Shown: positions 6,136-64,000 of the stretch, piece by piece | Layout: each line of letters starts with the position of its first letter | Position numbering within the stretch: the first letter of the stretch is position 1 | From: Basidiobolus meristosporus CBS 931.73 | Lineage: Eukaryota > Fungi > Basidiobolomycota | Assembly (NCBI GenBank): GCA_002104905.1 | Contig: MCFE01000230.1 | Location: 57,428-121,427 of the forward strand | DNA: 64,000 nucleotides | Reading direction: 5' to 3' | Notes under the pieces: generated by a model | What the model was told of the DNA's origin: nothing | Databases searched by the model: none | Seen by the model: the letters and a program-made list of their open reading frames with translations, nothing else | Program-made: the position numbers and the translations under genes

Positions 6136-6486
6136 GGAACGGGCACCATGTACAGTAAACGAATCTTAACCACCCACTTCAGCGAATCCCCCTAATCAAC
6201 CCGCCCCTTCCCTATCGTCACGCAAATAAACTCCATGTGTATGCTTGAACCATCGGAACGATCCATGTGCATTCATCCCCGACTGAGGCTCTGATGATTG
6301 ATTTCTGATACACTGGTCCGTTTCAGCTGCGATGTTGTTAGGACACCTCGGAATGATTGGAAGCTATATAATGGATTCATCCGGAGAAACGGAAAGCGTT
6401 CCAACCTAAACTCAACTAACCCCTCCCCACACCGGTCTATCTACTTAACCTTAACTCTAACCCCCCCCCCCTTGGCTTGCAACACG

Positions 6487-7293
6487 ATGAACTGTCTGCC
6501 CCCCAGCTTTGCCCGCACGCTGCACTGGCTCCTGTTGCTATGCGCACTGGGGCTCGGGATTCAAGCGGACGGAACGCCGTCCCTTCCCTCGGCATTCGAC
6601 CTAGCCTACGAATCGGAGGTGACGCCCAGCTGCAACGCGTTCTTCCAGAGATTCCTGTCGTCTGCGGATTTCCGGGCCTGCAAGCCGCTGAGCTTCTTCA
6701 TCACCAACTCGTACGAGTTCGCGGCGAGAAGCCGGGCGGCCCCCTACAACGCCCTCATGCTGGAGGAGATCTGCACCACGCCGAAGGTGGACTGCCAGAA
6801 GGTGATGCGGGAGTTCCGCCAGGAGATGGTCAAGATGGAGCGCTGCGGCCAGGACCTACGGGCCCAAAACCCCCTCGCTAATTCGGTCTATGTGTCGTTC
6901 ATCAACTTCCACCTGATGCAGCGGGTGGGCTGCGTGAAGGACGAGCAGGAGCAGAGCTGCTTTGTGGAGGCGTTGGAAGGCCGGGCCAACCTGAACCTCT
7001 ACTTCATGCCCTATGGACATCTGCTGTCCCCTGTCGACAACTCCACCGCGGCCAGCTCGGTGTGCACGCTCTGCACCAGCAAGGTGATGGACCTCTACGG
7101 CCGCTTCGGGTCACAGTACCGTAGCCCCTTGGGCCGGACGTACAAGCCATCCAAGGACATCATCATCGAACAGTGCGGCCGCAGTTTCTTGAAAGCCCAC
7201 AAGCAGCCCGCCAACGAGGGGGCAGCAAGGAGGCGGCTAACCAGCCTTGTGGGGATGCTGGTTGGCGTGGTCACGGCCGCGATGCTCCAGTAA
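6487..7293 (+). CDS. secreted Cys-rich, probably GPI-anchored fungal protein
   Basis: Single exon. Signal peptide MNCLPPSFARTLHWLLLLCALGLGIQA, about 10 Cys (CNAFFQRFLSSADFRACKPLS pattern) and hydrophobic C-terminus LTSLVGMLVGVVTAAMLQ. Confidence 0.75.
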   Translation: MNCLPPSFARTLHWLLLLCALGLGIQADGTPSLPSAFDLAYESEVTPSCNAFFQRFLSSADFRACKPLSFFITNSYEFAARSRAAPYNALMLEEICTTPKVDCQKVMREFRQEMVKMERCGQDLRAQNPLANSVYVSFINFHLMQRVGCVKDEQEQSCFVEALEGRANLNLYFMPYGHLLSPVDNSTAASSVCTLCTSKVMDLYGRFGSQYRSPLGRTYKPSKDIIIEQCGRSFLKAHKQPANEGAARRRLTSLVGMLVGVVTAAMLQ

Positions 7294-40388: not shown

Positions 40389-42236
40389 CTATGTAGCGTC
40401 GGGCGATTGGGCCGGATCCGACAGGTATCTGTCCTCGGCATTGTTGCTGCGTTCACATGGAATACGTGCTTGTGGTTCGATCCCGGCGGACTGAAGTTGC
40501 TTCCGCAGAGCATGGATGTGGTCATCGCGCTCCTTGATCAGCATTTCTAGCCGAAGGATATGGTCGTAGGCTGAAGACCCACCATCAATAAACTGCCCGA
40601 AACGAGACGAGAGAGATCACTTACATTTCTTCAGCAAGTAGGCTTTGCTGGGGGCCTTTTCCTCGATCTCCGGGATGACGCTCTTGAGATTCTCAAAGCA
40701 TTGCTTCAACGAATCCCGGCGTTTTTGCTCGGCCGCTTTGTGGCTGGTTCGGCGTAACTCAATACCGGAGTGAACCTCGCTTTTGTACTTCAGCCCTAGC
40801 GAGCTGTTCAGTGGTCACGGTTACTCAGAGTCGGTGGAATACAATCATGAAGCTCCCCAGGTACTTACGCAGTGTTCCCTTCGAGGATATTCTGGTAATT
40901 CGATTTGGTGGCAAGTTTCATGGCGACATCGTTGGTTCCACCTAGAAGGGCAAGATGAATGCAGGTTCCATGGATTGGCCCTAAAGGTAACTTACCGCCA
41001 GGAAGTAGTGGTTTGAGGCCGGGGCTAACCAGAGGCTTAAGACCTGGGGATTTAAACGTATTGGATAGTGCAGGTGACGTGGGAATGGCTGTGATCGTTG
41101 GAGACATCATCAGGGAGGGCCCCAAAGACGGAGAGGTGAGGGGGAGGTGCAATGGTGACGGCAAGGGCGCCAGCATCGAAGATTTCTTGGGGGCTTTCTC
41201 ATCGCCAAGCTTCATTAGGGTTGCTGGGGTTATAGGCGAAACCACAGAGCCTGTTCAAGATCGTTTAGTATATGGCTTTCATAGACCTTCTATTATAATC
41301 GAGTGTTAGTTTACTTGTAGAATCAGATGGGACGGTGGTCGACGTGCTCAGTGATGATGGAGTACTGGAGAAGCGGCGCTCCGGATAAGGCCGTTTGCGT
41401 TGAGGGATTGCGCGTGAGATGGGTGCCTTTCCTTTGGCACTGGATTTTGAAGGGTTATGGGTGTCTTCTCTTACTATCAACAGAGATTTGGAACGCGGTT
41501 GGGATGGCTTGGCCATAGATTGCATAAGCGACCCGCCCAGGGTCAAATTTGGGATACTACCATGGGTGCGCGATTCCCTGGTCGAGCTTGGTCCCAGAGC
41601 AGGTGATGTGAGCGGAGTAAAGTCTTCTGCCCCTAGGGAGGCAGAGAAAGCATTTGAAAAAGGATGAGAAGGGGTCATAGCAGGAGACACTAACGGAGTG
41701 AATAATGCCTATAAAGGTGGGAAGGGTCAATACGTTATTCGAGAGGGGATGGCAAAGAACACACCTACATCCTCTCCGTCCAAACTTTGCTCAACGACGG
41801 ACCCAGAATGATCGAAAAACGCAAATGGCGACATAAAAGAACAGTCGACGTTCCCAGTCAACTGACCGGAATTACTGGGCGTCGGCAATTGCTGTGGTGT
41901 ATGGACATCCGGTTGAGTGGAGGATAAATGAGGGCTTGGTATATAATTTGTACCGAGGCAAGTGGAAAAAGCCATAGGTGTCTGCTGGAAATGTTGGTCC
42001 TGGTGGAATTCCTCATGGTCCAAATAATCATTACCCGAATGAGCGTCCGCACGCGTATACTGACACTGTTCAGCTAGACCTGGGGCATTCTGCTCATGCT
42101 GATTCAAATACTCGGTAGGCTTGTCAAATGGGATTTGAGACAGCAGATGCGCTTCAGTGTGGTCCAAGTCAAGCTCATTTATCAGATTGATATCAAATTC
42201 GGGGATATCGTACGGCACCTGAAGGGAGGGATCCAT
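40389..42236 (-). CDS. Pho4/NUC-1-like bHLH transcription factor
   Basis: LATKSNYQNILEG upstream of the basic region RRTSHKAAEQKRRDSLKQCFENL..PSKAYLLKK. S/P-rich middle exons. Start approximate. Confidence 0.8.
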
Positions 42237-42562
42237 GAAATTCAACTTCTCTAGCTGGTAAACGATGCGAGTAAAGTGGGCTAGTGTGGAGAGGAAAACC
42301 CAAATTGGTTAGATGTCACAAACTTTTCTTTCGCCATTGGTGTTTGGAGCGCAAGACCCGTTCAAATTCTTTATTGGCTCTTCGGTGGAAAATACTACTT
42401 TGTGATTGCACAGGATATCTGATTCAACTGATTCTGGAAAATAACCTTAATTCTGTGATTGGTAAAGGGGATTTATACTGGACTCAATTGTATAAAGTGG
42501 TACGAGTAGCTAGTCACTTGGGAATTCTATCATGGGGAACATGGATTGCTGGGTTCATACAT

Positions 42563-45485
42563 TCAATTTAACTGCTTTTCGCCGGGGTTGGTGGTATTGG
42601 TAGAGAAATTTAATAAGGAGGGCGCTGTCCATGCAGAGATGCTGATCTTTCCATTGGCATCGTTGATGGCGGAGCCTTCAGTCGTGGCTGGTTGACCGGT
42701 CTTCGCTAAGGAATAAGCCTCCTTGTCAGCAATTCCGAGGGTATCTTTGGGCAGCCAGACCACGGGCACGGGCTCCCGCAGAGCTGGATGTAGAAAGGCA
42801 GCATCCGGCCCATTATTGTATATCGGGGGGAGTCTCACTTTGTGCCTAGACATTTGGGTACCAAAGCTCATGGTAGAACGAGCTGAGCGCAAGAAAGTAT
42901 TATCCATTGGAACGCTGGCCTGGTGTTTCTCTTCGGGTTGCTTTTTGTCCAACTCCTGCATATTTATGAGGGAAGAGTCGGAGTTTACGGTGGCGGTGTT
43001 AACGTGGTTTTCCAGAAGTCCAACTAGTGCGGGGTTCTTTGCGATATTAACGGGCAAGTACTTGATCAGGGGGCCATAGCCGTGGGATCCGTACAGATTT
43101 GCGACAATGGTGATCCCAAGAAGAACGAGCTGCATGATAAATTGGGCGTAGGCATTCTTTGCTAGCACAACCCCCGCCATGGTCAGGTGGTAGATGTACA
43201 GCCCCACAAACATGTGGTAGATGGCTTTGGGGAGTAGCAAGCCTCCGGATTGGAAGTGGCTGCTGTCATAGACATATTGAAACTGATGGTGGTACACAAA
43301 GTAAGTGATCAAGAAGTACGCCGAGACAAAGATCAAAAAGATTGGCGAGATCGTGGCATAGACGATCCCTTTGGGCAGAGAGTTAGCGTGTATCTACAAC
43401 TACGAACACGTGATGCATGAACGTACCTAGAACAAACACGAAGGTATGCTGTGGGAAAAAGGTGCCCCACTCTATTTGAGGCATTGACTTGAGGTTAATG
43501 AGCTTTCGTGGAGTTTTAGGAAGCAAGGAGGTCAAGACAAAGCGCAGGACAAACGGGACAGCTTGTAGAAGCTCCTTGACTCCTCCTGAGATTCCGTTTA
43601 GCATCACATAGTTCATGTAAAAGGTGGAGGACACCGGGATGTTACTTCCCAAGAGCGGAAAGAGTTTACTGATATCTTTGATGATTCCCTCAATTTCGGT
43701 CAATGCACTGATCGCGAGCGTAGTAAACAGAAAAACATTGATAACCTTGAAGCAAGTAAATGAGTGCATGCCCTCAGGCCACAATGCTAACCGCAATCGC
43801 TTACCAAGAAAAAGAAGTACTTGTCCATCACCGCCACCTGGATATCGCTGTTACGGACTAGACCCTCAAAGCGAGAGAGAACTATTGCTGACATTAGTAT
43901 CGATGCATGGCTGCCAATGCCAGAAAACTTACGTGCTAATATGATGGGGAGCAGGGCCATTAATATGGCCATCCCGAGTGGAGGTAGGATTCCCTTGACG
44001 ACACCCAGTACTACCGGATTCCATTGTATGTTTTTGAGTGCAGGAATTGCTTGAGCAATCCTATCAAAACTAAACACTGCCGCCACAAAACTAACTACAA
44101 GGCAACACCGTCAGTATGATCCGTTTGACCGCGTACTACGAGTGCTCACCACGAGTGCTTACCAGGGAAAAACCATAAAACGACTAAGCTGGCACCGCAG
44201 GCCACTGCAATGGCTTTGCGGATGTATCTTTCAAGCGAGAACATGTTTAGGTTCTCCCAGATAACCTCATTCGGGTCTACCTCAAGATACCGGCCCTCCA
44301 TGACTAATGGTTTGTTGTGCGCCAAAGCCTGCACTGCCAGATGGGCGGCTATCTGGGAGTGGAAGGTAATAAACGCCGACGCTCTGCGCGGAAACACCGA
44401 TGGATCCTTCTGCTGCTCGAGGATCTTTTCGTTCATCTGAGCTAATTCTTGTTTGTAGTAGTCAATCGAATCCACTTTGGGTCCCCGGAATGGGACCCAA
44501 CCTAGGCGATGAGTAGGGCGCATCGGTGGCTTGGTTGGATCTTTCAGCGATGCCATGATGAAATTCGCCTCTGCCTGCTCGAGTTTCTCCACGATTTGCT
44601 GTCGCTTCACAACATCCGCTTGCAGTGTATTTGCATTTCTACGTTGTAGGGTGAGTATTAGCCATCTCTGGATTCTTGCCAAGACAAATAACCAACCTAT
44701 TGATGTAAGCATGTTTAACCCCATCCGGATATACGGAGAAGATTTCGGTTAGCTTCTCAACATTATTCAGTTCGTCGGGAACTCCCGTAAGTAAAATAGT
44801 GGTCGACATTGGATTATCCTGATGCTCGGAACTCATCAAATACCGCTGGCGTAGTTTCAGATACACTTTCATCTCTCTGTTCATGAAATATAGAACCAGC
44901 CCTACCATTTTTTTTACCAAAATAGGTGTTCAGCAGCAGGACTTTAGAAGCAGCACGTAAACAAAACTCACCAGTGAATAGATAATCAAGAATGACATGA
45001 GCCCAAAGTTTGGATGTAGTTTTGACATTTCCAATGTTTAGGCGATTGAGACCCGTCAACCCCTGTTGGCCAGTAATGTTGATGGGCAGCAGAATTACTA
45101 GCGAGATCACTGTTATACTGAAGAACAGGTAAAAGCACATGCGCAAAAAGCGTAAGAAGACATATGCGTCCATGCCAACCCGGGACAAAAGCACTTTGTC
45201 GGGGGTATGATATACCTCGAGCAACCACGAGAAGGGATTGGGAGATAATTTCGGTGGTCGCTTCCTTCGGTAACATTAGCACTGGAAGGTGTTGACTATG
45301 AGATTTAAGGTAGCTTACTCGTCGTCCACCATATATGTTCGTGGTTGATAGATACTCTTGTCCAAAAGTCGAACACCGGCATATGCTACGTATATTGCGC
45401 CAGCTATCACCATATTAAACAGAAATGAAGAGATGAACGACTCGGTAGAGCCATTCTTTTCCTCGTCTGCATTACCACTATCCAT
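42563..45485 (-). CDS. CSC1/OSCA/TMEM63 calcium-permeable channel (Rsn1/Phm7-like)
   Basis: IYQPRT, GMDAYVFLRFLRM, LILLPINITG, LWAHVI, SAFITF, P.EVIWENL, DKYF.F..INVFL, FYMNYVML and YVY..GGLLLPKAIYHMFVGLY. Confidence 0.92.
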
Positions 45486-47539: not shown

Positions 47540-48070
47540 ATAATGAATTAATATCATAAAGTTTTAGTGTAAGCACCAAATCCCAGTCAATACGCAATAT
47601 GCGTTGCAGGTGCTTAGTTTGATTCGGAGAAACGTAAGGGAATGCATCAATAAATGTCAAGCAATATCGAGCATTGACTAGAATTTGCTTACTATTTCTG
47701 ATATTGACCATTAGCCATGTTGCCATAGAGTACGCAAATACAGTATTTAGTTCCACAATCCGGGACTTCTATTCCCAATGATATGGTGCAAGATTTAGAG
47801 TTGTCACATGTGTTAAACCAGTAGTTGTGAGGAAGTAGGATTTGCATTTGGTTGGATATCAGTGACACAACACTACGGATACAAGATACATATTGGAAGC
47901 CAGCTAGTCAGATAGGTCAAATTTCCGACAGCTAGCCAGTATTTGCTATGTCTTGTAGATCACAGGTACTATTTCTATCATAGACAGCCCAGCCAGATGT
48001 AATCGTTGTAAAGACAAGTGAGAGGTGGTTTTCATTACTTGGCATGGCCTACACGCCCTGATATCATGAT
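47540..48070 (-). pseudogene. conserved upstream module A1; possible decayed divergent gene
   Basis: Homologous to 50345-50910, 52405-52807 and 53440-53967. Antisense frame SVVSLISNQMQILLPHNYWFNTCDNSK..LGIEVPDCGTKYCICVLYGNMANG and later KHLQRILRIDWDLVL. Confidence 0.4.
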
Positions 48071-48215
48071 GTGTGTGGGAGAAATATTGCAATAGTAACC
48101 ACACCAAGAAGCTAGATGTGATTGTGGTAGCCTTAAATGAAAATACTGTTACAGCTAATGTGAGAGATACTGGTGTCATTGAAAGTAAATAACCAGTACA
48201 AAGTTTTTTGCTATC

Positions 48216-48386
48216 ATGAAAGTTTCACTAGTTACCTTCCCTGCTGTTCTAGCTGTTACCACAGCATCTCCCGTAGATAACACTTAGGATGATGGTGGTG
48301 CCGTAGAGACTCTTGGGTACTACTTAGTGAGGGGCTGTAGACTGAAGGGGGATAGGCACTATATTATGGGAACTTGTTTACCTTAA
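48216..48386 (+). pseudogene. Cys-rich secreted peptide copy 1 (decayed)
   Basis: MKVSLVTFPAVLAVTTASPVDNT*DDGGAVETLGYYLVRGCRLKGDRHYIMGTCLP*. Same 171-nt length as the intact copies, stop at 48285, four of six Cys lost. Confidence 0.88.
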
Positions 48387-50164
48387 ACCAGGTCATTCGC
48401 GGTCAATCAGTACTCTATTGGTTGAATATAATGCTGTGGTTACATAATATCTTAAGATATATACATGAATAACAAATTCCAACTCTTAAGCTATGGGCTG
48501 AAGGATGCGAATTATGGCTTGAAGTGCAATACAAGAATACAGTAGCAAACATAAAGGAATATCGGCCATTATGCAAAATATACTTTGATCCATATTGGAT
48601 GAAATAAATGTTTACAAATATATCCATGCTTCATGTTGCTCTTGTACTTGAGCTCATATATGCAACAGCATCACCCTTGAGCTTTTCATCCTTTCAATCT
48701 CATTGGCGGACATTGATGATTTTGTATTTTCATCATAGTGAGAGGGAATACACGAGGAAATGTATAAGAGTACATATTCCACTGTATGGGAGTTGGAGAA
48801 CCATTCGGACTCTTTTCAGCCAGAAACAGGGCCACTAAAAGTTATGAAACAGTGCGACAATATTCTTCGCTGACTTCTGGGTTGTAAATTTCCGCTCTAT
48901 GCACTGCGAGCTCGAGGCTTCGAAAACCACCCATACTTCAAGTCTATGGAGGGAATAGCTGCTATGTGCACCGCAGCTATTCGCAAGCCCAGCATCAATG
49001 GCCTCATGGTGTCACTGGCTACTTATACGGTGAGGCGGTAGCTTTTGAGGTTACTAATGACTTGAGGCTCCGGGACAGAGAGTAGCTTTTGTTGGTATAG
49101 TCGACACCCCCCCATACACCAAGCCAAGGATGCTTGATCTGGACTGAACTAAAGGATTCTTGAACCTATCCTACCTCTTGGATATGAGTGCCATAGGTTT
49201 TTGCTCCACATATCTATCCTGTGATTCTACAGTAAGAACGTACTGGTAACTTGAAATGAATCCGAGCTAACATTCAGCAGGGATTCAAAATGTACAAAAC
49301 AAATCTCTGGCACTAAAGGCCAGGTGTACGGATCCTACGAAGGCATTTTGTCTTACCCTGCCAGTAAATGTACCGAGTGGATAAATTAGTTATTGATGAA
49401 GACGTGATGATTGAAGTAGGGGCCACGAGCAGGCTGTGATTCCGCTTCAGCAAGTGAAATAATATCCCATCCATCAATGATTTTGGTTAATTCCTCCATA
49501 TCTATCCTGTATGTTGCAGTATTGATATTTGCGTTGATGTGCCAGTTTTGCATGCATTAATTTCTTGATCTTACAAGCAAACGAGTGTGGTGAATACCCA
49601 ACTGGAATCGTATACTATGACGAAGAATGGCCCAGTATATGAAGCGGATTCACTGAAATAGAATATGCTCTTTCGTTTTATGCACTTCACCAAATTTATA
49701 TCTTCAGCATTGTGATTATTCAGAGGTAACCGACACTGGACTCATAATGTATGTTCTAATGAAGATAACTATTCACAAAACTCATGCTATTGTAGAGCCC
49801 ATATCATGTTGACAGCCTTTAGTTTTAAACAAAAGAAGTCAATCTAAAATCAAATGGTAATAAAAATAACAGTAATGTGAAACAGAAGCTGCGAACTAGT
49901 AAAGTGAAAGTGTGTACACAATAGCTACCTGGACGTCAGTGTTTCATACCAGCATATTTGCAGTTCATCTCCTACCAGGGAATGGTAGGTTTAGGTGATT
50001 GGCTAGCCAGTGTACGAGTAGGGTGATGTCGTAAGCATGGCCCAAACTAAATGTGACTTGGATGTTCCAGAATAGGGATTTCTGTGAGAGATATCCTGCG
50101 ATAGTAGCTGAATCAAGAGACTAAATGCCCACGTATTATGACTGTACGGAAAATTGACTGTATC

Positions 50165-50329
50165 ACTCTGGGATTCACATATTAGTTTGCTTGCTGTTCT
50201 GGCTGTTGTTTAAGCATCTCACGTGGACAACAATCCGGGCAATAATGGTATTGTGGAGGCTCTTGGATGCTGTCTGACATGAGGCCATAGACCGAGAGTG
50301 ACGGTTACTGTGTCATGAATCGACACTAA
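50165..50329 (+). pseudogene. Cys-rich secreted peptide copy 2 (decayed)
   Basis: SLLAVLAVV*ASHVDNNPGNNGIVEALGCCLT*GHRP. ATG lost, two stops and a frameshift. Confidence 0.8.
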
Positions 50330-50344
50330 TGGGCCCAAATGTCA

Positions 50345-50910
50345 TTGCCAGTGTGCTAGACTACAATGCAGTAATATCATAAAGATATCATTGTAAGCAC
50401 CAAGTCCCAGACAATACGTAGTATGTGTCACAAGTGCTTGGTTCGCTTCGAAGAGAAATGAGGAATCCCAGTGATGAATAAAAAGTATTATTGAACATTG
50501 TAAAGAACGCACTTGCCATTGATCATGCTGCCACAGAGCACGCAAACACAATATTTTGATCCACAATCCTGGATTTTTATTCCCAAGAATATGCTCGTGA
50601 TCTAGAGGTGCCATGAGCGTTAAGCCACTAATGGTCGTGAAATAGGTTTTGTCTTCGGTTAAACAACTGTGATACAATACTATACAAATCCTCAGACAGG
50701 TACATTTTACTAGCTAGCTAACCAGCTAAAATCCTTCCCAAATATCAAGCTTACATCTGATAACCGGTATTTGCTATAGCCTGCGGATCACAGGTACCAT
50801 TGCTGCTATCTAGCGACCTATCCAGATGTATTCTTGGGAAAGGTTTGCTTTAGGTGACACTTGAAGCTTGGTATAAGCCACATGTGGGGAAAACATTCCC
50901 AGTATCATGA
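50345..50910 (-). pseudogene. conserved upstream module A3
   Basis: Aligns with A1. Antisense LGIKIQDCGSKYCVCVLCGSMINGK and KHL*HILRIVWDLVLT. Confidence 0.4.
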
Positions 50911-51020
50911 TGTACGAGAGAGAGATAGTATAACAACAATTACACAAAGAAGTCAGATGTGATTGAGACAGCATCATATATGAAAGTCAGTGCAGTTAAT
51001 GTGTAATATTATTGTAAGAG

Positions 51021-51032
51021 AGGTATATAAGC
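51021..51032 (+). promoter_or_regulatory. TATA box of peptide copy 3
   Basis: AGGTATATAAGC about 45 bp upstream of the ATG. The equivalent AGTATATAAACG at 52921-52932 precedes copy 5. Confidence 0.6.
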
Positions 51033-51072
51033 ATGTATTTCATCTACAAAACACATCAAATTCTCCGCTATC

Positions 51073-51243
51073 ATGAAAACCTCATTCGTTACTCTGCTCG
51101 CTATTCTAGCTGTTGCTACAGCATCTCCAGTGGACAACACTCCAGGCGACGATGGGACCGTGGAGGCACTAGGATGCTGCCAAATGTGGGGCTGCGGGCC
51201 AAAGGGGGATAGATGCTGTATTATGGGAGCTTGCTTACCTTAA
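51073..51243 (+). CDS. intact 56-aa secreted Cys-rich prepro-peptide (copy 3)
   Basis: MKTSFVTLLAILAVATA-SPVDNTPGDDGTVEAL-GCCQMWGCGPKGDRCCIMGACLP*. TATA upstream, AATAAA at 51322. Below the ORF-track length cutoff. Confidence 0.9.
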   Translation: MKTSFVTLLAILAVATASPVDNTPGDDGTVEALGCCQMWGCGPKGDRCCIMGACLP

Positions 51244-52232
51244 GCCAAGTCATCCGCAGTCAATTGATGCTTTTTTGGTAGAATGCTATGCCGCTTACCT
51301 TGAGCTTATTCACTACCAACGAATAAATACTTTATTGACAGATTACTGCTGTAGCCAAATGGGTTGAATATAACATGTGCGAAAATTAAATCACACTGCT
51401 GCACTATGAGATTGGATAATACAACAGCTTTATCCTACTATTATTGTGGTTATGTTGTGAGCTATGGGAACTCTCATGTTTGGTACTTTGCTAATTGGGC
51501 TTTACGGGATTATACGCATGGAGCGTAAGATACTCAAATTGGAGCTCTACGCCCAGAGCTACACTTGATGTCGAGAATTTTCATACTTACCTCAGTGATA
51601 CACAATTCCAGTGCTAAACTCGGCAAAAGGTATATCGCAGATCAAATATTTCTCACATATCAGGTTTATCCAGTGTTTGCTATATTGAAAGCGGAAGAAC
51701 ACTACATTCAAAACACTTGATGCCGAGAATTTTCATTAAGGTAAGCTGGTGTTAGGTATGTGGTATGGGCTACGTATGAATCACCCATTTCTGAGATTGG
51801 TATGTGTAACTTTATCTGCCTGCTTCAAGAGTGATTCAGAGTTGAGTAAGGAAATATACCAACCAATATTGATCGTTCTTCGGACAGTGGTCACTGCCCA
51901 TTGTGTCAGTTGGAATTCCATAATATTGGTTCTCTTTGCCCTAAAATACCTTTCAAATGTAGTGCAACTGTAAATGCATGCGTGACAATATAAAGCTTGC
52001 TTTTCATTGGAGCTTTACTTGCCTCATCAATCAAGCCACTCAGTATAAGGCTCAGTGCTAGATATATTGCAAAACCAGTACTGTCAAGCTAACCTTTCCC
52101 ACATCTAGTATTTTGCTGGCCCAATTCTATTAGTTAGTTTGTATCGGGTGATGTTATAAGTGTGCTATAAACTATAGGTGATTTGTGTGTTCCAGAATAG
52201 TGGTTTGTGTGAAAGACATGATAAGGCTAAGC

Positions 52233-52406
52233 ATGCTCTAGTTGTATTTTGATTGGTGTCGTAACTATTGTCACAACAACTCTAGTGGATAGTACTTCAA
52301 GTGATGGCAATGCCGTGCAGGATCCCTTTGTTTGATTCCAAGTTCAATAAGGGAACCCAGCAAGGAAGACCAAACAACACTGAGTATCCTATGGAGCTTG
52401 CCTACT
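52233..52406 (+). pseudogene. highly degenerate peptide copy 4
   Basis: IGVVTIVTTTLVDSTSSDGNAVQ aligns to the signal/pro region. 3' end TATCCTATGGAGCTTGCCTAC resembles TATTATGGGAGCTTGCTTAC. Upstream 52140-52215 matches the upstream of copy 2. Confidence 0.5.
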
Positions 52407-52807
52407 ATTTCTCAAATTGGTGCTTGGTCTTGTTGTGAGATATTGCACAGATACAACGTTTAGTTCCACAATCCTCAACTTCTATTCCCCATAATACGTT
52501 CCGAAATTTAGAGTTGTCACAAGTATGAAACCAGTAACTGTGGAGAAATAGGATTTGACTTTGGTTAGACCGCAGTGACACCCCACTATGAAAATCCCTA
52601 GCAATATACATATTACTAGCCAGCTAAAGTTGTTTAACAAGCCAACTTTACGATTGCTAACCAGTATTGATTATATTTTGCAGCTCACAAGTGCAATTAA
52701 CGATACAGAGCGTTTCGTTCAGATACATTCCTTATCAATATAAGTGTGAGGTAGTGCTTGTGGTTTGGCATGAGCCATATTGGGCTTAAACATTCCTGAT
52801 ATCATAA
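52405..52807 (-). pseudogene. conserved upstream module A5
   Basis: Contains ORF MYIARDFHSGVSLRSNQSQILFLHSYWFHTCDNSKFRNVLWGIEVEDCGTKRCICAI. Confidence 0.4.
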
Positions 52808-52971
52808 TACGTGGGAGAAACATCGCGATTGCGATCACTTAAAGGAGCTAAATGTGATGGAGGTAGTGCTGAGAAAATCGTTACGGCCAATGCGATCTAA
52901 GCTGGTACCACTGCTAGAGAAGTATATAAACGTGCATCTCACATAGTACATGTATGAAGTACTTTGCTATC

Positions 52972-53142
52972 ATGAAGATCTCACTCATTACTTTGCTTGT
53001 TGTACTAGCTGTTGCTGCCGCATCTCCCGTGGACAACACTCCAGGCGATGATGGTGTTGTGGAGGCTCTAGGATGCTGCCAAATGTGGGGCTGTGGACCA
53101 AAGGGAGATAAATGCTGTATTACGGGAGCTTGCTTACCTTAA
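52972..53142 (+). CDS. intact 56-aa secreted Cys-rich prepro-peptide (copy 5)
   Basis: MKISLITLLVVLAVAAA-SPVDNTPGDDGVVEAL-GCCQMWGCGPKGDKCCITGACLP*. GCTATCATG start context shared with the other copies. Confidence 0.9.
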   Translation: MKISLITLLVVLAVAAASPVDNTPGDDGVVEALGCCQMWGCGPKGDKCCITGACLP

Positions 53143-53222
53143 GCCAGGTCTTTGGCAGGCAATCAATGCTTTATTGGCTGTATGTTTTGCAGGAATAAAG
53201 CAGTACTAAGGTCTTGGCTATC

Positions 53223-53405
53223 ATGTGATCATTATTCGTTGCTTTGCTTGCTGTTCTAGCTATTGCAATAGCTATTGCAATAGCATCTCCGGTAGACAAT
53301 ACTGCTGGAGATGACGGCCCCGTGGAGGTATTAAGGTGCTGCCAGATGTGGGGTTGCGGACTGAAGGGTGATAAGTGCTATATCATGGGAGTCTACCTAC
53401 CTTGA
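53223..53405 (+). pseudogene. peptide copy 6 (decayed)
   Basis: M*SLFVALLAVLAIAIAIAIASPVDNTAGDDGPVEVLRCCQMWGCGLKGDKCYIMGVYLP*. Stop at codon 2, 12-nt duplication, two Cys>Tyr. Confidence 0.88.
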
Positions 53406-53439
53406 GCTGGGACAATCTGGATAAATAAATACTGTGCTT

Positions 53440-54160
53440 GCAGAGCACACTACTTCAATCAAGACATAATATGAGTACTAAATCCCTGACAATACGTAGT
53501 GTGTGTTGCAAGCTATATAGGGGAGCTCAGTGATGAACCACAAGGCATATTGGGTGTTGTGGAGAATGTACTTACCATGCATGACATTGAGTCATTGGCC
53601 TTATTGCCATAGATTACACAAAGACAGCGTGTAGTTCGACAATTTTGGTTTTCGATTTACAAGAATACGCTCCAAAATTTATAGTTGGCACCAGACCGAA
53701 ACCACTCATGGTTTTGTGTATGGTTAGACAACAGTGATACGACAATATAGTATTCTTCGGTGATTCAGCGGCTACAACCCAGCTAGTCAGATAAAGTTGC
53801 TCACACATATCAAGCTTACAACTGCTAACTGGTATTTGCTATATCCTGGAAACCACAGGTGCCATTACTACTATAGAACAGTCCACTCAGATGTATAATT
53901 GGGAAATGTCTGCTTTGGGTGGTGTTAAACATAGGTTGCACATGTCTTAAGTGTCCCTAATAGCATGATATGTGCAAGAGAAATATTGTAATAGCAACTA
54001 CACAGAGTGATCAGGTGCGATCAAGCTGACATCATATGAGAAAATTGCTGCAACCAATGTGAAATATACTGGCGCAGTTTTAAGGGAAGTAAATCAACTT
54101 GCATTACATTTAGAAACAGCACTAACATCTTTGCTATCATGAGAAGCATACTTGTTATTG
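53440..54160. pseudogene. upstream module A7 plus truncated peptide start (copy 7)
   Basis: Aligns with A1/A3/A5 and ends TTTGCTATCATGAGAAGCATACTTGTT, after which homology stops. Confidence 0.6.
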
Positions 54161-55496: not shown

Positions 55497-56084
55497 TGTA
55501 GGTGTTATAGTAAGGGCTAGGAAAAGCTTAGAAGAGCAGGGGATCTGGGGGATGCAATCCCCCATACTGCTCCCATACTCTTTGAATTCCCTTTGGATTA
55601 CTTTTCTCTCATTCTTGGTTCTGGTCCCTTAGGGTTAGAATTCCTCCTCCTAACCCTTATCACCCTAACCATAAATATTTTTACCCTACAATTGGCACAT
55701 TGTCTGCTCATATAGTGGGCATATCTGGGCCAATATTTGTCTCCCTATACTGTACATATGCTCTGTATAAGTCTTGATGACTATTTAATTAATAAATTGT
55801 TATTTTTAATGTATATCTAATAATTAATGGGAATCATCCCAAACTGGCCACAATCCCATATTTTGATAAGCTTTGGGCACCATAAATTGCGCGGCCCTAA
55901 TATGATAAAAAAATTCATGGCCAATACAAATTTTCTGTAACCCAATTGCTTTTACCAAATATAAAGTGTATCCCAAAGTTCAATATATATTATGGCTACA
56001 ATAGAAACTTTATTTGACACCATTGCAACTACTACTTGTGTTCTATGCGCACATGTATACCGCGGGAATTGTAAAACTTAGCCA

Positions 56085-56715
56085 CGTGGTACAAAAGTGC
56101 TTTTATTTTTCATCATGATAGTTTTACATGAGTTCCTAACGCACTTTGAAAGTACACAGTAGCCATACCCCAACAGGTTTTAAGGATATCCACTAGCTAC
56201 ATCTACTTGTGTCTAACAAGAGCCATCAATCATCAGCCGCGCAATACTGAAATGCTTTTATTTTTCATCATACTAGTTTTGTATGAATCCCTAACACACT
56301 TTCATAGTGCATGGTAACCATACCCCAACAGGTTTTAAGGATACCCACTTGCTGCGTTTACTTGTGTCTAGTGGGAGTCATCAATCATCAGCCACGCGGT
56401 AATAAAGTGCTTTTATTTTTCATCACAATAGTTTTACATGAGTCCCTAACACACTTTCATAGTGCACAGTAACCATACCCCAACAGGTTTTAAAGATACC
56501 CACTTGCTACATTTACTTGTGTCTAGCAGGAGTCATCAATCATCAGCCACACGGTAATAAAGTGCTTTTATTTTTCATCACAATAGTTTTACATGAGTCC
56601 CTAACACACTTTCATAGTGCATGGTAACCATACCCCCAGAAAGTAGTGTAGATGCTTACTTTAAACGCTCACTTGTGTATTGTAGGGACTATCAACAAAC
56701 AGCCGCGTGGGAATG
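56085..56715. repeat. 155-bp tandem repeat, about 4 diverged units
   Basis: GCTTTTATTTTTCATCA recurs at 56099, 56254, 56409 and 56564. Confidence 0.9.
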
Positions 56716-57957: not shown

Positions 57958-58575
57958 ATGAATGATGCTGAGCAAGTTGCTGTAGTCACTACCAGGTGGC
58001 CAGTCAACCAAGTTTCCCAAGCATTGTCAGAGGTTCAACAAGAGCTTCCAGAATATAGGACAACATTGCACCATGAGATATTGCAACATATGTGCCAGGA
58101 GATTAAGCAGAGGAGGGGTGATATTGTAAAGCTAAATTGGGATATTGCTGGACTTCAAGCCCAGATTGATTTCAGTTTCCACCATTCTACTGAGGCATTA
58201 GTGGCACAAATGGTGGAAAAGTTTGCCTGCATCAGGGCAAGTGATGAGCAGGGTGCATCTTCCAACCCAGGTGTACTTGCGAGCAACAGTATTGGAGGGG
58301 ATACTACTTCCTCCCTTGAACCTACCACAAGCCAAGAGACAAGAGCAGAATCCTCCACAACAATGAGAATGGCCACCATGCAGGCTGATATGGAAGTGTG
58401 CAAAGAAGACGTGGAGAAGCAGAGTGGGGATACTATAGGCCAACCAGAAACTGTAATGGAGGTGGAGAGACCAAGTCATATTGTCATCTTAAAAATACCA
58501 CAGGTTGATTCATTGCTATCACTTCCCCCATCATCACTATCTGTGCCCCCATCACCACCACCATCCTCTGGCTAA
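57958..58575 (+). CDS. hypothetical ORF (coiled-coil, S/P-rich tail), probably decayed
   Basis: 205-aa ORF preceded by a broken RGRG-rich frame. No recognisable domain. Confidence 0.35.
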   Translation: MNDAEQVAVVTTRWPVNQVSQALSEVQQELPEYRTTLHHEILQHMCQEIKQRRGDIVKLNWDIAGLQAQIDFSFHHSTEALVAQMVEKFACIRASDEQGASSNPGVLASNSIGGDTTSSLEPTTSQETRAESSTTMRMATMQADMEVCKEDVEKQSGDTIGQPETVMEVERPSHIVILKIPQVDSLLSLPPSSLSVPPSPPPSSG

Positions 58576-61290: not shown

Positions 61291-62237
61291 GGTGGTAGGG
61301 GGATGATCATCACCAAAGGGTGAAATCTTTATTTAAATAATAAATAAAGAAGCCAAGTTTGAATATGAATAGCTGAGATGCAGGAAGCCTACAAGATAAA
61401 CTTGGACTTTGCTGTATCCCAAATATCCTCAATATCAAAGTCTAGAGGAGAGTGTAGCAAGACTGCTTGCTCACTGTAGTATTTCTTGAGGAAGTTTATG
61501 ACTTGAAGGGAAGGAGAGTTTTTCAACAAGCTGGTAAATCTTTTGAGGAGTTCTTTTTCCAGAGAGAATGGCACAAAGTGTGGAATGTCCAAATGATGTC
61601 TGAATATATGCTCTGAGAGCTCCCAATCCAGCATATTTTTGACTTCTTCTGTAAAATCTTCAACAATATCTTTGTCAAGAATAACTTCCAAGAGATCTCT
61701 GGCAATGTACTGAATGTTAATAATCTTAGGCATATGAATACCTAGGTCCTTGAGGTAGTTTCTTTGTTCTGATACTGGGAGATATCCTGCATTTCTGAAA
61801 TAGCAAACAGCCCAGTTGGCAGTAGGAGGGGTATCAGGGCTGACAGGGAATCTTCTTCTGGCTTTAGAGTGCACTGGCTTAGGAGACTGTCTTGATGGAA
61901 GGGCAGCTGGTTTTGGATGAGCTTGAAGTGCTTGGGAGTAGGTCTGAGCACAAGTAGTAGAAGTTCCTGGTTGCTGAGAATTTTCAGATTGACTGGATGA
62001 AGAGCTAATTGAGGGGTTGCAAGGTAAGGAAGAAGCTGAAAGAGAAGTGGAGAGGGCTGGGTGAAGTTCAGAAAGAGTTTTGAAAAGAATTTGGATCTGA
62101 GATTTCAACATTGAGTTTTCAGCTTCAAGAAGAGAAACTCTTTGTTCAAGGTAAGAAGTCTGTAAAGAGTGAAAGTTGGGTAAAGACATGGAAGTAGTAA
62201 ATTAGAAGAAAGGAGTAGTTGGGGTGGGAGGGTGGGA
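61291..62237 (-). mobile_element. ORF1-only telomere-proximal element; intact 266-aa gag-like ORF at 61389-62189
   Basis: Coiled-coil N-terminus, TYSQAL motif and YFRNAGYLPVSEQRNYLKDLGIHMPKIINIQYIARDLLEVIL, resembling fungal non-LTR ORF1. 3' end 61291-61356 is homologous to 63271-63333. Confidence 0.7.
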
Positions 62238-63265
62238 AAATAGGTAAGAAGAAAAGAGAGGAAAGATCTGAAATTGAAAATCTCAGAATTTATAGATGGA
62301 TGGACAAGGGTAGAGGATTGATTAATCCAGGGTTAGGGAAAAATAGGTAAGAAGAAAAGAGAGGAAAGATCTGAAATTGAAAATCTCAGAATTTATAGAT
62401 GGATGGACAAGGGTAGAGGATTGATTAATCCAGGGTTAGGGAAAAATAGGTAAGAAGAAAAGAGAGGAAAGATCTGAAATTGAAAATCTCAGAATTTATA
62501 GATGGATGGACAAGGGTAGAGGATTGATTAATCCAGGGTTAGGGAAAAATAGGTAAGAAGAAAAGAGAGGAAAGATCTGAAATTGAAAATCTCAGAATTT
62601 ATAGATGGATGGACAAGGGTAGAGGATTGATTAATCCAGGGTTAGGGAAAAATAGGTAAGAAGAAAAGAGAGGAAAGATCTGAAATTGAAAATCTCAGAA
62701 TTTATAGATGGATGGACAAGGGTAGAGGATTGATTAATCCAGGGTTAGGGAAAAATAGGTAAGAAGAAAAGAGAGGAAAGATCTGAAATTGAAAATCTCA
62801 GAATTTATAGATGGATGGACAAGGGTAGAGGATTGATTAATCCAGGGTTAGGGAAAAATAGGTAAGAAGAAAAGAGAGGAAAGATCTGAAATTGAAAATC
62901 TCAGAATTTATAGATGGATGGACAAGGGTAGAGGATTGATTAATCCAGGGTTAGGGAAAAATAGGTAAGAAGAAAAGAGAGGAAAGATCTGAAATTGAAA
63001 ATCTCAGAATTTATAGATGGATGGACAAGGGTAGAGGATTGATTAATCCAGGGTTAGGGAAAAATAGGTAAGAAGAAAAGAGAGGAAAGATCTGAAATTG
63101 AAAATCTCAGAATTTATAGATGGATGGACAAGGGTAGAGGATTGATTAATCCAGGGTTAGGGAAAAATAGGTAAGAAGAAAAGAGAGGAAAGATCTGAAA
63201 TTGAAAATCTCAGAATTTATAGATGGATGGACAAGGGTAGAGGATTGATTAATCCAGGGTTAGGG
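62238..63265. repeat. ten apparently identical 103-bp tandem repeats, each containing GGGTTAGGG
   Basis: Unit starts at 62238, 62341, 62444 ... 63165. No spacer variation seen. Confidence 0.97.
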
Positions 63266-63794: not shown

Positions 63795-64000
63795 TTAGGG
63801 TTAGGGTTAGGGTTAGGGTTAGGGTTAGGGTTAGGGTTAGGGTTAGGGTTAGGGTTAGGGTTAGGGTTAGGGTTAGGGTTAGGGTTAGGTAGGTTAGGGT
63901 TAGGGTTAGGGTTAGGGTTAGGGTTAGGGTTAGGGTTAGGGTTAGGGTTAGGGTTAGGGTTAGGGTTAGGGTTAGGGTTAGGGTTAGGGTTAGGGTTTAG
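63795..64000 (+). repeat. telomere (TTAGGG)n
   Basis: About 34 units to the window end, with one variant stretch TTAGGTAGG near 63885-63893. Confidence 0.99.

Follow-up and report, generated by a model that had tools for sequence, protein, structure and literature searches.

A stretch of 64,000 nucleotides from Basidiobolus meristosporus CBS 931.73 (contig MCFE01000230.1, positions 57,428 to 121,427; the window, in whose numbering all coordinates below are given) carries a subtelomeric tandem array in which a very short gene is present seven times as related copies, all on the plus strand between 47542 and 54160. Two of the copies are intact and encode 56-residue precursors with a signal-like N-terminus, an acidic stretch and a C-terminal core containing six cysteines. 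It is very probable that these are real, selected genes for an exported cysteine-rich peptide. The fuller interpretation which we favour, and regard as reasonably probable, is that of a genus-restricted, exported mini-peptide, predicted to be locked by disulfides and to act outside the cell, with an antagonistic or defensive role as the first choice. That role is put forward tentatively; even if a real gene for an exported peptide is granted, an antagonistic bioactive function is a serious candidate which falls somewhat short of probable.

The array and its two intact genes

Seven related copies, two of them intact (at 51073 and 52972), had been proposed in an earlier note on this DNA, and both tblastn and the open reading frames (ORFs) bear this out. 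Matches to c3, the first of the intact copies (the seven are labelled c1 to c7), were obtained by tblastn with E-values of 3e-33 for c4, 5e-23 for c5, 2e-17 for c1 and 1e-11 for c2, so that the copies are related far beyond chance. Self-comparison gives a repeat unit of ~900 bp, made up of ~670 bp of upstream sequence, the coding sequence and ~45 bp downstream; such units lie at 47542-48427, 50365-51291, 52326-53190 and 53563-54145 and are 64-68% identical. As the unit includes the upstream sequence, the array begins at 47542 and not at 48216 as was first thought. The remaining five copies are broken by stop codons, lost cysteines or truncation. The subtelomeric location claimed earlier is confirmed by a telomere repeat, from which the array lies 9.6-16 kb distant (9.6 kb from its last element). 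The features are:

47542-48215, plus strand: upstream (promoter-region) block of c1 and start of the array; 64-67% identity over ~900 bp to the c3, c4 and c6 units; TATA box lost.
48216-48386, plus strand: c1, a full-length pseudogene, 73% identical to c4 at the nucleotide level; codon 24 is an in-frame stop and, of the six core cysteines, four are replaced (three by Tyr, one by His).
50175-50300, plus strand: c2, a fragment without ATG; two in-frame stops; homology ends after the first CC; 78-83% identity (blastn) to codons 4-36 of c3/c4.
50365-51072, plus strand: upstream block of c3; TATATAA at 51024-51030 (-49 from the ATG), the same position as in c4.
51073-51243, plus strand: c3, an intact 56-residue gene; signal 51073-51123, acidic spacer 51124-51171, six-cysteine core plus Leu-Pro 51172-51240, stop 51241-51243.
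51322-51327, plus strand: AATAAA, candidate poly(A) signal of c3, 79 nt past the stop.
~52240-52420 (approximate limits), plus strand: c7, a much-decayed relic that can be recognised in its signal/spacer part alone.
52326-52971, plus strand: upstream block of c4; TATATAA at 52923-52929 (-49).
52972-53142, plus strand: c4, an intact 56-residue gene; signal 52972-53022, spacer 53023-53070, core plus Leu-Pro 53071-53139, stop 53140-53142.
53194-53199, plus strand: AATAAA, candidate poly(A) signal of c4.
53223-53405, plus strand: c5, a pseudogene directly behind c4, without an upstream block of its own; stop at codon 2; 12-nt (Ile-Ala)2 insertion; two core cysteines changed to Tyr.
53563-54160, plus strand: c6, an upstream block and the first ~7 codons (from 54139 to 54160), then a junction with unrelated subtelomeric DNA.
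63795-63997, plus strand: telomere repeat (TTAGGG)34, which sets the array as subtelomeric.

The layout read earlier from c3 and c4 is exactly that of their translations: a 17-residue signal-like N-terminus ending in A-x-A, a 16-residue acidic stretch, SPVDNTPGDDG(T/V)VEAL, and a 23-residue tail, GCCQMWGCGPKGD(R/K)CCI(M/T)GACLP, with the pattern CC-x4-C-x6-CC-x4-C. The tail has a calculated net charge of ~+1 and contains no dibasic (KR) site, again as claimed. Calculated monoisotopic masses of the oxidised core are 2381.88 Da for c3 and 2323.88 Da for c4; with the spacer kept, both would be 39-residue forms. The acidic stretch may be a pro-region that is cleaved off.

The divergence of the two intact genes argues that they are maintained. 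Their coding sequences are 86.5% identical, against 54-64% for flanking segments of 100-300 nt, and the proportion of synonymous differences (pS 0.32; dS 0.41) is about that of the flanks, while the proportion of non-synonymous differences (pN) is 0.08 (omega, dN/dS, 0.20; binomial P = 0.001). Because synonymous sites are as diverged as the flanks while pN stays low, selection is indicated rather than conversion. Across four phylogenetically independent pairs purifying selection was found at P = 7e-10; pN was lower in the core than in the signal and spacer (Fisher P = 0.002), with pS indistinguishable between them, and pN/pS was 0.09-0.3 in the core and 0.3-0.8 in the signal/spacer. Judged by these substitution patterns, the window pair and its family are under purifying selection, strongest on the core. 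A TATA box stands 47-77 nt before the ATG in 13 of the 14 intact genes of the family (TATATAA at -49 in both window genes), AATAAA follows 25-145 nt past the stop in all 14, and the TATA box has been lost from the broken window copies c1, c5 and c6. Selection, these signals and retention in two species together point to a functional gene.

The array as a whole may be seen as the birth-and-death turnover of one subfamily at a chromosome end, in which two genes are kept by selection and five copies have decayed. It has the look of a higher-order repeat, the short degenerate c2, c7 and c5 being interleaved behind the long units c1, c3 and c4, and c2 and c7 have a common upstream segment of their own (50021-50094 and 52146-52219, 76% identity). 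The c6 upstream block is 64-66% identical to those of c1 and c3, with a 44-nt repeat of the start region at 54114-54157, and an alternative in-frame ATG at 52954 would add six residues to c4. Between c1 and c4 transitions number 38 and transversions 8; changes of the TGY-to-TAY type account for three of the cysteine losses in c1. Decay of the broken copies by a process like repeat-induced point mutation was considered but is not clearly indicated, as the 38:8 ratio of c1 comes without a clear C>T/G>A direction or strand bias and that of c7 is 28:26.

Family members and their distribution

Intact full-length members number 14, fragments not counted, and lie in six loci of the two species B. meristosporus and B. 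ranarum, where they form tandem arrays spaced at ~0.7-1.9 kb. Loci outside the window include:

L003 (B. meristosporus, contig MCFE01000058.1): three intact genes.
L001 (B. meristosporus, contig MCFE01000058.1): two intact genes and one broken.
L005 (B. ranarum): three intact genes.
L006 (B. ranarum): four intact genes.

Decayed or altered copies occur in these paralogous arrays as well, such as one without the first GCC (L001, 8152-8313), one without the MK start (L005, 5111-5425) and one with a 14-residue C-terminal extension past the ...SACN end of its close relatives (L005, 7163-7396). No telomere motif turned up in the sequence retrieved for the paralogous loci.

An exhaustive HMMER search of 1.84 billion representative proteins with a profile of c3 and c4 gave two real matches, of 57 and 61 residues, both from Basidiobolus. 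Two further matches were spurious: P0002 (2837 residues) aligned over the signal/spacer only and P0004 represents the translation of a repeat. With a profile of five precursors, six matches (E 5e-30 to 3e-11) were obtained in a collection of 5.8 billion clusters, all of them Basidiobolus proteins named "hypothetical protein" from B. meristosporus CBS 931.73 or B. ranarum. For c3, the profile matches to Basidiobolus paralogues ranged from E 2e-18 to 5e-30. An earlier word search with a single sequence had returned no relative, an uninformative blank since the later profile search gave six. As far as these searches reach, the family is restricted to the genus Basidiobolus and conserved in two of its species.

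The earlier statement that the peptides belong to no named family stood up well. A Pfam scan of five members at E<=10 gave no named, conotoxin or toxin family (for one member a sub-threshold match to DIM, E 0.09, covered the signal-peptide region only and was rejected), no sequence in the PDB matched the family profile at E<=10, and the profile searches gave Basidiobolus proteins only. When a low-confidence model was compared with the PDB by Foldseek a single row at E = 9.5 was returned and no structural neighbour; in the ESM Atlas feature search the best score, 0.79, was below a meaningful level. A scan of metagenome contigs produced 262 pattern matches, none of which was confirmed as a relative. 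The scan of bacterial and archaeal genomes gave only a 15-residue match in Antrihabitans cavernicola, an out-of-frame-looking, stop-interrupted translation of GC-rich DNA attributed to chance, so there is no sign of a bacterial origin. None of six core motifs occurred in the literature searched, nor did a Basidiobolus paper on disulfide peptides; there, CC-C-CC-C was not found as a stand-alone framework, only within longer ones (e.g., XVII C-C-CC-C-CC-C, D-superfamily). The framework CC-x4-C-x6-CC-x4-C is thus apparently unreported.

Annotation of the family is patchy. Exact look-up did not find c3 or c4 (c4 also in its upstream-ATG form) in a collection of 15 billion proteins, and as that collection contains annotated CBS 931.73 paralogues, both genes appear to be unannotated in the protein set of this strain. 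The suggestion that such genes had escaped annotation therefore holds for the window; however, seven paralogues are present in GenBank as hypothetical proteins, namely ORY02310.1, ORY02343.1 and ORY02344.1 of B. meristosporus and four K7432_* proteins of B. ranarum. Since only 3/7 of the intact B. meristosporus genes found in this analysis are annotated, secretome surveys of early-diverging fungi probably undercount genes of this size.

The genes are intronless and ~170 nt long, and the precursors, 56-63 residues in length with six cysteines (~10%), share the core G-C-C-[QH]-x-[YW]-G-C-G-[PS]-x-G-[DNS]-[KR]-C-C-x-x-[GS]-x-C. Across five aligned precursors 16 columns are invariant, all six cysteines among them; family-wide, the Met-Lys-x-Ser start, the Ala at position -1 relative to the predicted signal cleavage and Pro-Val at +2/+3 do not vary. 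Within the core G1, C2, C3, G7, C8, G12, C15, C16 and C21 are invariant, and Q/H4, Y/W6, G9, P/S10, D/N/S13, K/R14 and G/S19 nearly so. Every member has six cysteines in the 20 residues of the cystine span (30.0%), and the only cysteine motifs are CC and CC-x4-C, with neither C-x-C nor C-x-x-C. The core, near-neutral and rich in aromatic residues and Met, has a net charge of ~-0.3 to +1.8 across members (not strongly cationic) and an oxidised mass of 2134-2382 Da; for subfamily A the calculated monoisotopic value is 2156.66 Da. It is preceded by the four residues (I/V)-(E/G)-(A/G/T)-(R/L), the last being Arg in 10/14 members and Leu in 4/14 (both window genes and two B. ranarum genes). In most members nothing follows the last cysteine of the core; Leu-Pro is appended in the window genes and Asn in some of those from B. 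ranarum. Each precursor has one core, with no KR-separated repeats and no dibasic site. The sequence features of the operational class of fungal small secreted cysteine-rich proteins are present (a signal-like N-terminus, fewer than 300 residues, high cysteine content and no known domain), and on this evidence the family may be placed broadly in that group; it matches no described family within it.

A maximum-likelihood tree built on a short alignment separates c3, c4 and the B. ranarum loci L002/L004, with moderate support (89/88), from the QWY genes that occur in the two species. As the window genes group with B. ranarum genes away from the QWY genes, the tree suggests that two subfamilies predate the split between B. 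meristosporus and B. ranarum.

Predicted processing, possible role and alternatives

The maturation that we propose begins with a signal peptide of 17-22 residues, which would direct the precursor into the endoplasmic reticulum (ER) and be cut after the invariant Ala. An acidic, disordered spacer of 16-19 residues would come next, and the C-terminal 21-23 residues, in which the six invariant cysteines are placed on either side of a G-(P/S)-x-G turn, would be oxidised in the secretory pathway to a compact three-disulfide mini-peptide and released. The last four residues of the spacer and the Gly that starts the core are conserved, which suggests a processing site where they meet; the spacer is probably trimmed at this (I/V)-(E/G)-(A/G/T)-(R/L)|G junction, leaving a product of ~2.1-2.4 kDa. 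For the signal peptide, the rules of thumb are satisfied throughout, with Ala at -1, Val or Ala at -3 and Pro-Val at +2/+3 in 14/14 members and a hydrophobic core. The mature peptide most likely acts outside the fungus, as a stable ligand or inhibitor whose conserved target belongs to other organisms, and would in that case be an antagonistic or defensive peptide of the fungus among gut and soil microbes and animals rather than a cationic, membrane-lytic one; the near-neutral charge and the richness in aromatic residues and Met make a compact ligand or inhibitor with a defined target the better fit. By analogy with other genes, tandem and partly subtelomeric birth-and-death arrays are typical of genes for interaction with other organisms, which would support the antagonist reading.

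Several points weigh against this interpretation. The signal peptides were judged by rule of thumb and not by a trained predictor such as SignalP. Two AlphaFold runs with 13-sequence alignments reached a mean pLDDT (predicted local distance difference test) of 57.9 and 52.7; both models have two short strands flanking the G-(P/S)-x-G turn and a disordered acidic spacer, and at such low confidence they give neither a fold nor a disulfide map. The presence of Arg in some members and Leu in others at the putative cleavage site leaves no obvious single known protease, and a form of 36-40 residues, with the spacer retained, may be the final product. Effectors caught in arms races and venom peptides usually diversify; the strongly conserved core seen here would fit an endogenous signal equally well as a toxin. 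Five of the seven copies in the window array are dead, no expression or secretome study of Basidiobolus covering the family genes was found in the literature, and no RNA run is listed for 50600-53500.

The alternatives are taken here in the order self-signal, metal or redox peptide, precursor of the RiPP type (ribosomally synthesised and post-translationally modified peptide) and silent relics. An endogenous signal, that is, a secreted autocrine or paracrine cue (pheromone-like, for density or for development) perceived by a receptor of Basidiobolus itself, with the gene copies providing dosage, is in our opinion distinctly unlikely. The mature core is the most conserved part of the precursor by its pN/pS, and such conservation would fit co-evolution with the fungus's own conserved receptor, as would the near-neutral charge suit a signal. 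Four of the five B. meristosporus subfamily-A paralogues have an identical 21-residue core at a pS of ~0.27 among the five (the fifth differs at two core residues), and 15-16 of the 21 residues are kept between species. Pheromone precursors are typically encoded by several gene copies that all specify the same peptide. However, no disulfide-rich secreted signalling peptide is known from fungi, both species keep two old subfamilies that differ in their cores, the vicinity of the loci showed no receptor candidate, and birth-and-death turnover in subtelomeric arrays is more characteristic of interaction genes.

Next, the six cysteines could serve to bind metal or buffer oxidants outside the cell, the two CC-x4-C half-sites, with Met, Trp or Tyr beside them, chelating Cu or Zn in place of forming three structural disulfides. 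The crowding of six invariant cysteines into 20 residues as two similar half-sites is what such a peptide might have, many members carry a Met or an aromatic residue within both loops, and the acidic spacer could raise the affinity for metal. Yet peptides routed through the ER normally leave it with their cysteines oxidised, and the loop Met is not conserved, being Thr in c4 and Ser or Tyr in subfamily A. In addition, the precursors differ from metallothioneins, which are cytosolic, in their signal-like N-terminus and their lack of C-x-C or C-x-x-C clusters, and no Pfam metallothionein or copper-protein match was obtained at E<=10. We consider this function very unlikely.

It is at least as improbable, and ranked behind it, that the precursors are of the RiPP type, the conserved spacer being the leader by which tailoring enzymes encoded elsewhere would recognise them. 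In its favour, the spacer is conserved in its last four residues, as are the first residues past the signal cut, and Basidiobolus is known for an expanded, partly horizontally acquired secondary metabolism (PMC7466969). Against it, the three B. meristosporus loci have no tailoring-enzyme gene in common, a eukaryotic signal peptide is present, and the only bacterial match was the chance one given above. Moreover, precursors of Kex2-processed repeats or of dikaritin-type RiPPs are not resembled, since each has a single core, KR-separated repeats and dibasic sites are absent, and the arrays are not flanked by shared enzyme genes. Finally, that the intact ORFs are silent relics, recently decayed or never expressed and conserved as a by-product of gene conversion, is the least probable of these explanations, for although five copies are broken, c3 and c4 are unannotated and no RNA run is listed, a pS close to that of the flanks beside a pN of 0.08 is a signature of selection and not of conversion, the family has been retained, with this same pattern, in both species, and the intact copies retain the TATA box and AATAAA.

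Comparison with known peptides, and the surrounding DNA

The exported mini-peptide which we favour can be set beside several known systems. The closest among fungi in layout are secreted cysteine-rich effectors of the Avr9 type; Avr9 of Cladosporium fulvum is made as a 63-residue precursor of a 28-residue product with six cysteines. Both have a short precursor of the intronless type, with a signal, an N-terminal stretch that is removed (presumably so in Basidiobolus) and a six-cysteine C-terminal peptide, and both are lineage-restricted and arranged in the multigene or subtelomeric fashion usual for the interaction genes of fungi. However, there is no sequence similarity, the framework is CC-C-CC-C and not the knottin C-C-C-C-C-C or C-C-CC-C-C, the Basidiobolus core is only 21 residues long and conserved rather than diversifying, and its bearer is a zoopagomycete fungus of gut and soil and not a plant pathogen. 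Knottins have the connectivity I-IV, II-V, III-VI; the Basidiobolus framework differs from their usual ones, and the AlphaFold models are too low in confidence for the connectivity to be compared.

The earlier note had likened the precursors to those of conotoxins, a likeness which survives for the layout only. Like the precursors of the alpha 4/x and M-superfamily conotoxins, those of Basidiobolus run from a signal through a putative pro-region to a C-terminal cysteine-rich peptide of ~2 kDa with three putative disulfides, and a single Arg stands before GCC in 10/14 members; G-C-C-x4-C, with which the core starts, resembles loop 1 of the alpha-4/x conotoxins. In contrast, the origin is fungal, no conotoxin model in Pfam and no PDB sequence was matched, the stand-alone CC-C-CC-C is not among the frameworks in the literature searched, and the mode of evolution is reversed, the core being conserved in Basidiobolus and the signal and spacer variable.

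The enterotoxin STa of Escherichia coli, with a C-terminal peptide of ~18-19 residues and the framework CC-CC-C-C, is likewise the product of a gut-associated microbe and is arranged as a pre-, a pro- and a C-terminal three-disulfide peptide with CC pairs (disulfides that are predicted in Basidiobolus). It differs in being bacterial and in its framework, and the Pfam family Enterotoxin_ST gave no match to the Basidiobolus family at E<=10.

Similar in size and composition are the beta-ginkgotides, known only from gymnosperms, with the framework C-CC-C-CC and disulfides I-IV, II-VI and III-V (PMC5522442). They are hyperdisulfide-constrained peptides and have in common with the Basidiobolus family a size of ~2 kDa and 18-23 residues, two CC pairs among six cysteines, ~30% or more cysteine in the cystine core, a precursor with a signal and a pro-domain (here the putative role of the spacer) and restriction to one lineage. 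Their framework, however, is the mirror image of that in Basidiobolus, and the class is defined by more than 30% cysteine in the cystine core (PMC5522442), so that the Basidiobolus members, at exactly 30.0%, lie on its border. The boldest version of our interpretation would make the family the first fungal hyper-disulfide-constrained mini-peptide scaffold, a high-affinity ligand or blocker by which an early-diverging gut fungus acts on a conserved receptor, channel or enzyme of its animal hosts, its prey or its microbial competitors, and thus an independently evolved counterpart of the venom and enterotoxin mini-peptides; we think this rather unlikely.

Three-disulfide peptides of ~2 kDa, such as conotoxins, analogues of enterotoxin and guanylin, and ginkgotides, are prized as stable and selective ligands and are known mainly from animals and plants. 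Basidiobolus lives in the guts of amphibians and reptiles and occasionally infects humans. If its family does consist of such peptides, it would add a new cysteine framework, from a branch of the fungi that is still almost unexplored, and offer a concrete handle on the dealings of the fungus with its hosts or competitors.

Around the loci examined the arrays have as neighbours genes for an OSCA/CSC1-like channel, an ABC transporter, an alcohol dehydrogenase, an aminotransferase and PSME4; none is common to these loci and there is no sign of a cluster of modifying enzymes. In the window the last ordinary gene before the array is that at 41265-45224 on the minus strand, where ORFs with RSN1_7TM and PHM7_ext make up an OSCA/CSC1-type channel gene with introns. 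Between the array and the chromosome end there is a 155-nt tandem repeat at 56080-56636 (3.6 copies, 87% matches), followed at 57958-58575 by a 205-residue ORF which is an exact member of a "hypothetical protein" cluster of ~20 paralogues (161-268 residues) on many CBS 931.73 contigs, which is probably a repeated gene family associated with subtelomeres. Two ORFs lie within 3.5 kb of the telomere: that at 60395-61072 matches the beginning of an SNF2-related domain (E 1.4e-8), and that at 61389-62189, on the minus strand, has weak matches to bZIP/coiled-coil models. Ten tandem copies, 100% identical, of a 103-nt unit containing GGGTTAGGG lie at 62237-63265, between the subtelomeric ORFs and the terminal element and telomere. 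Far from the array, an ORF at 6298-7293 has a strong match to DUF7729 (E 1e-42).

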